DNA of 64,000 bases, from contig NIVC01000376.1 in the NCBI GenBank assembly GCA_002269645.1, positions 310,001-374,000 on the forward strand, in the 5' to 3' direction. Made by a program: the position numbers and the translations under genes. Of this stretch, positions 57,881-58,469 are shown in pieces. The notes below the pieces were generated by a model, which was not told where the DNA came from, made no database searches, and saw nothing but the letters and a program-made list of their open reading frames with translations. Position 1 is the stretch's first letter; every line of letters begins with the position of its first letter. This DNA comes from Macrostomum lignano (lineage: Eukaryota).

Positions 57881-58469
57881 TTAGAGACCATTGTTCACGT
57901 GATGGCAGATCACTGCGCACCGACGCATGACGCATCGATAGCTCAGGCTGTTGTGCCGCCTGGCGCAGTCCCTGTTGGTGAAGCACTGGACACGAAGCAC
58001 GTAGCAGTCACCGTTAGAGTGAAACAAAAATCGCTTGTTGATGGCAGGGCCCTGCTGCTGCGGCTGGTTCTCCGACTGCTGCAGGTTGCGGGCTCTGGGG
58101 TCAATGCTGAGCCACTCGAGTGCTGGGTTGGGGTCCTCGTCCACTGCGCGGTTGGTTGGTTGGTTGGTTGTTGTTGGTTGGTTGGTTGGTTGGTTGGTTG
58201 GTTGGTTGGTTGGTTGGTTGGTTGGTTGGTTGGTTGGTTGGTTGGTTGGTTGGTTGGTTGGTTGGTTGGTTGGTTGGTTGGTTGGTTGGTTGGTTGGTTG
58301 GTTGGTTGGTTGGTTGGTTGGTTGGTTGGTTGGTTGGTTGGTTGGTTGGTTGGTTGGTTTGTTGATAAAAAGACTTACCCAGTCCAACGTGAAAGCCGCC
58401 AACAAAGACTATTGGGCCAATGCCAGCTACTAGAATCGCAAGCAGAGCAGTTCTCAGTTGAGTGTGCAT
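57881..58469 (-). CDS. Two-exon secreted cysteine-rich prepropeptide (117 aa)
   Basis: Exon 1 58469-58379 (hydrophobic leader [25 protein letters not shown], donor G|gtaagt). Intron 58378-58144 is almost pure (CCAA)n. Exon 2 58143-57881 is in phase, with a KR site followed by a 49-aa peptide with 6 Cys. Confidence 0.6.
58150..58360. repeat. (TTGG)n microsatellite forming the intron of the cysteine-rich peptide gene
   Basis: Near-perfect tetranucleotide tract. Confidence 0.95.

Follow-up and report, generated by a model that had tools for sequence, protein, structure and literature searches.

We analyzed a stretch of 64,000 nucleotides (nt), hereafter the window, from contig NIVC01000376.1 of the Macrostomum lignano assembly GCA_002269645.1 (Mlig_3_7), with an offset of ~310,000 between contig and window positions. 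On the minus strand at 57881..58469 lies Mlig006190, a small two-exon gene that codes for a prepropeptide of 117 amino acids (aa). The protein is obtained by joining 58469..58379 to 58143..57881. The coding part of exon 1 (58379..58469, minus strand, 91 nt) encodes a hydrophobic leader and provides residues 1–30 and the first base of codon 31. Its ATG has an A at −3 and agrees with the start of the deposited coding sequence (CDS), and an in-frame TAG is located 8 codons 5′ of it at 58493..58491. The coding part of exon 2 (57881..58143, minus strand, 263 nt) provides residues 31–117 and includes the TAA stop at 57883..57881. Its remaining two frames are blocked by stops, which speaks against the concern, raised in an earlier sequence-only reading of this stretch, that exon 2 could belong to another gene in another frame. 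The first AATAAA 3′ of the stop (57628..57633, minus strand) is 248 nt downstream and kept in position in all three genomic copies of the gene described below; it is likely to be used as the poly(A) signal.

The same reading had proposed this splice model and had called the gene hidden. The model and the 117-aa product hold letter for letter. The gene is not hidden, as the product exactly matches two GenBank entries, PAA72559.1 and PAA84384.1, deposited as hypothetical protein BOX15_Mlig006190g1/g2, and is 98% identical to a third, the g3 copy PAA84257.1 (N66S, Y78F). Exon boundaries of the deposited CDS are those proposed, and in a brute-force search of GT..AG pairs a single join reproduces the protein. 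For the M. lignano annotation, RNA-seq reads were mapped by STAR, transcripts were assembled by StringTie and TACO with the addition of a de novo transcriptome, and open reading frames (ORFs) were called by TransDecoder (PMC5730564). Because the annotation was built from RNA-seq transcripts, the deposited model is transcript-derived evidence for the junction. An older, independent and partly misjoined model from an earlier assembly, A0A1I8FF97 (P0003), has the same junction, with GFHVGL before and VDEDP after the join. Other ORFs at these positions, namely a 210-aa ORF on the plus strand (57842..58474) and a 174-aa unspliced ORF (57881..58405) and a 122-aa ORF on the minus strand, were rejected as repeat artefacts of (CCAA)n, which is open in several frames.

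A single phase-1 intron (58144..58378, minus strand, 235 nt) separates the two exons, having a GTAAGT donor, a (CCAA)~50 core and a CGCGCAG acceptor. Tandem Repeats Finder places the (CCAA)n microsatellite, which reads (GGTT)n on the plus strand, at 58150..58364 of the minus strand with a period of 4, 54.2 copies and 98% matches. The repeat fills ~91% of the intron. Among the four paralog groups introduced below, only Mlig006190 has a microsatellite in its intron. From −33 to −3, the acceptor tract of the Mlig006190 copies is 47–50% pyrimidine, all C and zero T, and the tracts of the paralogs are 53–60% pyrimidine with 17–27% T. As to the caveat of the sequence-only reading that the acceptor lacks a normal polypyrimidine tract, the tract is therefore unusual, yet not dramatically weaker than in related genes of M. 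lignano.

Hidden polyploidy and extensive sequence duplication are reported for M. lignano (PMC5730564, PMC10468722). Mlig006190 is found in three genomic copies, L001 (g3), L002 (the window copy) and L003, which have the GTAAGT and CGCGCAG sites in common. Their introns are 201 nt with ~45 CCAA units in g3 (10092-10292 of its locus), 235 nt with ~50 units in the window copy (58144-58378) and 125 nt with ~26 units in L003 (10092-10216 of its locus). Because these lengths are 0, 1 and 2 mod 3, respectively, the protein can be shared by all three copies only via splicing. Intron retention would shift the reading frame of the window copy and of L003, each of which then soon meets a stop, whereas g3 would still give an in-frame product, lengthened by 67 aa of (TNQP)n that separate the leader from the pro-region. 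Splicing across the CCAA intron is thus evidenced indirectly, from the transcript-derived annotation and the copy comparison.

Of the 7 sites at which the three CDS copies differ, 5 are synonymous and 2 non-synonymous, against totals of 81.7 synonymous and 269.3 non-synonymous sites. The ratio of non-synonymous to synonymous divergence (dN/dS) is ~0.12, with a binomial p of 0.009, and Mlig006190 is, judged from these substitutions, under purifying selection. Identity among the copies is 98–99.4% in the CDS. Beyond the 3′ untranslated region, g3 is 95% identical to either of the other two copies, which are 99.5% identical to each other.

The precursor begins with a hydrophobic leader, in which Kyte-Doolittle means over 9 residues reach up to 3.1 at residues 9–17, with R6 before them. 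Leader cleavage after G25, with V at −3 and G at −1, is plausible. A spacer follows and then K67-R68 (codons at 58031..58036, minus strand), an invariant dibasic pair and putative proprotein-convertase site. The remainder is the predicted 49-aa mature peptide FLFHSNGDC…ICHHVNNGL (57884..58030, minus strand), containing six Cys with spacing 6,5,10,4,3. It has seven K/R, two D/E and four His, giving a net charge of +5, and the precursor lacks an amidation signal. For this paralog, the length, cationic character and Cys spacing are as the sequence-only reading had described them.

That reading had also called for a search for paralogs, and three further groups were found in M. lignano. Searching 1.84 billion representative proteins by phmmer gave 6 matches, and searching a 5.8-billion-protein collection with a full-length profile gave 7, all from M. 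lignano; a search with a profile of the domain only added zero new family members. These matches represent four paralog groups, Mlig006190, Mlig017203, Mlig004136 and Mlig025436, none with more than three homeologous copies. Longer UniProt entries (P0003, P0007, P0011, P0013 and P0015) derive from older gene models that are misjoined or extended upstream. Queried by tblastn with the full protein and with its pro and mature parts, neither the window nor the sequence flanking the other Mlig006190 copies yielded a paralog. Nor was a relative found outside M. lignano, though the collections include very little from other macrostomids or from most free-living flatworms, and distant homologues of short Cys-rich domains easily escape detection. 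The family is apparently restricted to M. lignano in the sense that it was not found elsewhere in the searched collections.

All four paralog groups have two coding exons with one phase-1 GT..AG intron located 30–35 codons past the Met, and the intron lengths are 125–235 nt in Mlig006190 and 685, 902 and 2201 nt in the others. The conserved position and phase of the intron corroborate both the homology of the groups and the reality of the intron. Every paralog starts with Met, then has a basic residue and then a hydrophobic run. The prepro part is 38–78 residues long with a variable spacer. The layout of leader, spacer, KR and six-Cys domain proposed earlier is borne out by the KR and the Cys framework, which are invariant in 4/4 groups. 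The invariant columns are K67, R68, F69, S73, G75, C77, C84, F85, D89, C90, C101, C106 and C110, and the Cys spacing is 6,5,10,4,3 except for 6,5,9,4,3 in Mlig004136.

The dibasic KR sits exactly where the variable pro-region gives way to the conserved domain. Identity between paralog groups is 8–29% in the prepro part and 43–61% from KR to the last Cys (34–55% when Cys are not counted). The net charge of the mature part varies across the paralogs as +5, +3, +1 and −1. Residues P4–P1 are INKR, KTKR, AYKR and RAKR, of which RAKR (Mlig025436) fits the furin consensus, and INKR and AYKR are of the plain dibasic type cut by prohormone convertases. As read from these sequences, processing would release peptides of 48–53 aa whose newly freed N-terminus follows the conserved pattern F-[LM]-[FY]-x-S-x-G-x-C.

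The literature appears silent on this family. The gene ID is absent from the literature by full-text search, and Mlig006190, Mlig017203, Mlig004136 and Mlig025436 are all absent from the supplements of PMC5816591, PMC7336406, PMC5730564 and PMC8662610. Literature searches on neuropeptides and on secreted cysteine-rich proteins of Macrostomum likewise turned up nothing about this family. The gene itself is publicly annotated as a hypothetical protein; the peptide family is apparently undescribed and seemingly lineage-restricted.

For structure prediction and Pfam scans, we used a family set of 8 sequences from the four paralog groups. With the alignment of these sequences, AlphaFold2 gives a confidence score (pLDDT, predicted local distance difference test) of 84–89 over residues 81–110. 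The model consists of a short strand, a helix at 87–94 and a β-hairpin at 99–104/107–112, with the prepro part disordered. The model from the single sequence is unusable (pLDDT 46.7). When the predicted domain was compared with the PDB by Foldseek, no significant neighbour was found. The top match is the half-SLPI WAP domain 4doq_B with an E of 0.61 and a probability of 0.47, which is not significant, and the best match of the CSαβ type is the scorpion toxin 1cn2 with an E of 3.3, a probability of 0.10 and TM-scores of 0.20/0.31. ShK-type structures are absent among the PDB matches at E ≤ 10, and Foldseek against BFVD gave nothing.

Sequence-based tests likewise gave no significant match. Scanning the 8 members against Pfam-A by hmmscan at E ≤ 10 detected no ShK, defensin, Kunitz, LDLa or WAP domain, although the filters of the program may hide very weak matches. 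Nodulin_late (PF07127) was matched by just two Mlig006190 alleles of the 8 members, at 19.5 bits (E = 1.2e-3) against a gathering threshold of 30.4, and was rejected, as was DUF5556 (E = 0.065), taken as a chance match. The suggested likeness to nodule cysteine-rich peptides thus fails as a family assignment, being below threshold here and absent in the paralogs. Among PDB sequences, neither the single protein nor the family profile matched anything above chance level; the matches were to LDLa modules of VLDLR, nitric oxide synthase and antibody chains.

Each candidate family was also checked by its own marks. LDLa was rejected because the acidic Ca2+-binding cluster (D-x-S-D-E) expected between the fifth and sixth Cys is absent and the matches to VLDLR modules are weak (E = 0.69 by phmmer and 2 by profile); the weak alignment reflects the common C-X6-C-X5-C spacing. 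For CSαβ, there is no CXXXC in the helix, in which C90 stands alone among residues 87–94, and no CXC, with the spacings being 6,5,10,4,3. β-Defensins and big defensins do not fit for want of a terminal CC, as the last two Cys are separated by 3 residues in every paralog. BPTI/Kunitz has no Pfam match at E ≤ 10, and the spacing is unlike the Kunitz pattern. A WAP four-disulfide core needs eight Cys and the peptide has six, and the best structural match is not significant. ShKT (PF01549) matches none of the 8 members by its hidden Markov model and has no structural neighbour of its type here, the model being a helix with a β-hairpin. The toxin- or defensin-like assignment of the sequence-only reading is therefore not upheld at the family level, and its statement that no known family could be recognised still holds after Pfam, PDB sequence and Foldseek searches.

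The automatic names given to this six-Cys domain in UniProt cannot be relied on. They conflict with each other, with A0A267DLA0 (P0006) labeled as ShKT and A0A1I8G0A0 and A0A1I8I8A7 (P0007 and P0013) as BPTI/Kunitz, and a BRICHOS label is attached to the misjoined older model (P0003). Several of the labels belong to older models with misjoins, and none of them is reproduced by Pfam at E ≤ 10. By sequence, Cys framework and predicted fold, no tested family fits.

Partial likenesses to several peptide systems can nevertheless be noted. Precursors of invertebrate peptide hormones and neuropeptides such as eclosion hormone, trissin and insulin-like peptides have a signal peptide, spacer, dibasic site and Cys peptide in the same order as the hydrophobic leader, spacer, KR and six-Cys domain here. 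The Mlig006190 family is also like them in having KR directly before the Cys domain, a conserved mature N-terminus, a drifting prepro part and purifying selection. It differs from them in having no sequence similarity to hormone families (in Pfam, PDB sequences and the collections of 1.8–5.8 billion proteins) and no amidation signal. Conotoxin precursors are also built of a signal, a pro-region, a basic site and a C-terminal Cys-rich peptide, with a C-C-C-C-C-C framework. Conotoxin superfamilies retain their signal sequence while the mature toxin is hypervariable, and the mature part diversifies in many antimicrobial-peptide families as well. The pattern is reversed in the Mlig006190 family, whose mature domain is conserved and whose prepro part is variable.

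Among folded domains, ShKT resembles the presumably secreted one of Mlig006190 in being small and secreted, in holding six Cys within ~35–45 residues, often behind a processed propeptide, and roughly in its first three Cys spacings. The ShKT fold is essentially helical and its C-terminal Cys ending is tighter, whereas the Mlig006190 domain has a predicted β-hairpin and a C-X4-C-X3-C ending. CSαβ defensins and scorpion toxins share with the model a helix followed by a two-stranded antiparallel sheet, three disulfides and, in the case of this paralog, a cationic character; in the Mlig006190 family, however, CXXXC and CXC are missing and the charge is not conserved. Legume nodule cysteine-rich peptides (Nodulin_late) have the same inner C-X5-C … C-X4-C spacing. 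The Nodulin_late family is not known outside plants, and the likeness would be at most convergent.

We conceive that Mlig006190 produces a convertase-processed secreted peptide that is likeliest a receptor ligand, and put the probability of this explanation as a whole at about 50%. The pre-mRNA would be spliced across the 235-nt, nearly all-(CCAA)n intron, and the N-terminal hydrophobic leader would carry the product into the endoplasmic reticulum. There, the C-terminal six-Cys domain is predicted to fold into a compact helix and β-hairpin with three disulfides. A subtilisin-like proprotein convertase would then cut after Lys67-Arg68 to free the 49-aa peptide, which would act extracellularly, likeliest as a hormone, neuropeptide or pheromone. 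Because conservation covers the mature domain, including its N-terminus, but not the prepro part or the charge, a specific protein partner is favoured over membrane attack or an arms-race toxin. A signalling role seems more likely on this ground, as a preference and not a demonstration; taken by itself, the role of signalling ligand is tentative and somewhat short of even odds.

Several points weigh against this explanation. Secretion, the cut at KR and the pairing of the disulfides are inferred from the sequence. The hydrophobic stretch is long (~20–24 residues, T7–V31) and could be a signal anchor instead of a cleaved signal, although an anchor would still put the six-Cys domain in the lumen. 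RNA-seq support for the junction comes via the annotation, and the selection test is based on just 7 variable sites. The structure model was built from eight sequences of four paralog groups only. Finally, the mature peptide of Mlig006190 is strongly cationic (+5, with four His), as would suit an antimicrobial peptide.

The last point leads to the alternative that the peptide is a host-defence or toxin-like effector in mucus or gland secretions, killing microbes or blocking the ion channels of prey or predators as defensins or ShK-type peptides do, which we regard as unlikely but the most serious of the rivals. Besides the charge and the four His, it can draw on the tripartite precursor with KR, typical of venom and antimicrobial peptides too, on the loosely defensin-like helix and β-hairpin of the model with its weak CSαβ match in Foldseek (E = 3.3), on the ShKT domain-containing label that UniProt gives to one paralog, and on the fact that lineage-restricted multigene families are common among defence genes. 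However, the label is one of a mutually contradictory set, the 8 members have no Pfam match to ShK, defensin or Kunitz at E ≤ 10, no Foldseek match is significant, and the Cys signatures of CSαβ and β-defensins are absent. The charge, on which a toxin or antimicrobial role would chiefly lean, is not conserved and falls from +5 to −1 across the paralogs. Conservation is also much higher in the mature domain than in the signal and pro parts, the opposite of what conotoxin, defensin and similar families usually show. Rather unlikely in our estimate is a glandular or reproductive secreted protein, of seminal fluid, eggshell, cement gland or adhesive organ, that is structural or acts on the mate, with or without KR processing. 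Many small secreted proteins restricted to Macrostomum are reportedly related to reproduction or glands, and the family was undetected outside M. lignano. On the other hand, a dN/dS of ~0.12 and a conserved mature domain are unlike rapidly evolving reproductive proteins, and the four gene IDs are absent from the supplementary tables of two studies on reproduction-related genes, a weak point as the tables may be truncated or use other identifiers.

It is highly improbable that Mlig006190 is not a functional coding gene at all, being a chance ORF in transcribed repeats or having taken exon 2 from another gene or frame. The region is indeed full of tandem repeats, and the intron acceptor tract has no T. 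Such a view would have to explain three conserved copies with a synonymous excess, three divergent paralog groups with the same domain, KR site and intron phase, closed alternative frames in exon 2, and a domain on which AlphaFold2 is confident. Moreover, there is no other annotated gene from 47881 to 64000 of the window, and the nearest lies >6.5 kb upstream of the ATG, past the window end. The non-coding reading is effectively refuted. Returning to the processed receptor ligand, we may extend it to a speculation that is itself unlikely: the four groups would constitute a new, macrostomid-specific fold family of convertase-released three-disulfide ligands with receptors of their own, and the CCAA length would tune both the efficiency of splicing and expression between homeologous copies.

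The window (1–64000) is extraordinarily rich in tandem arrays, so the repeat-filled intron is in keeping with its neighbourhood. A 20-bp minisatellite of 49 copies (58770-59750) begins ~300 bp upstream of the Mlig006190 ATG. Long arrays are abundant elsewhere in the window, with a 15-bp unit ×150 at 7937-10188, a 23-bp unit ×61 at 20154-21546, a 21-bp unit ×60 at 54870-56136, (GATA)215 at 60423-61284 and (CTGT)141 at 30438-30990. At 22509-22571 there is a short interstitial telomere-like repeat, (CTAACC)x10.7, the reverse complement of TTAGGG.

Other genes are recognizable in the window. An intronless 506-aa ORF on the minus strand (27523-29043) encodes a rhodopsin-family G-protein-coupled receptor, matching Srw best (E = 6.7e-13) and also 7tm_1 (E = 1.6e-10) in Pfam. 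It is ~29 kb from the peptide gene and is a candidate for peptide-receptor screens, with no functional link implied. Exons of a TRPM-type cation channel lie on the plus strand, with a TRPM2-like domain at 6329-6967 (E = 5.7e-21) and an Ion_trans segment at 16349-16873. A further stretch at 17433-18008 (plus strand) has no Pfam match and was put with the channel by eye from its TRP-box-like motif. Several kb of minisatellite arrays occupy the gaps between these exons. ORF fragments of an ABCF-type ABC ATPase (ABC_tran, ABC_tran_Xtn) are at 35458-40408 on the minus strand, and a 587-aa ORF at 43782-45545 on the plus strand encodes a protein kinase taken as polo-like from a weak match to the POLO box; the two genes are of an ordinary housekeeping type and flank the repeat-rich region. 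A tRNA-Arg gene (anticodon CCT) is found at 11319-11391 on the plus strand by ARAGORN and Rfam (67.9 bits).

The practical gain from these results is modest, since invertebrate genomes commonly encode orphan secreted peptides rich in cysteine and this gene had already been annotated publicly. The length-variable microsatellite intron with its T-free acceptor is a natural test case for splice-site recognition in flatworms. If our explanation is true, M. lignano has a small, lineage-restricted family of processed disulfide-rich peptides whose Cys framework and predicted fold match no described family. Orphan peptide families are the usual source of new ligand-receptor pairs and of antimicrobial or channel-active scaffolds, and because M. 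lignano is a flatworm model amenable to transgenesis and RNA interference, the four paralogs would be directly testable in the animal itself.

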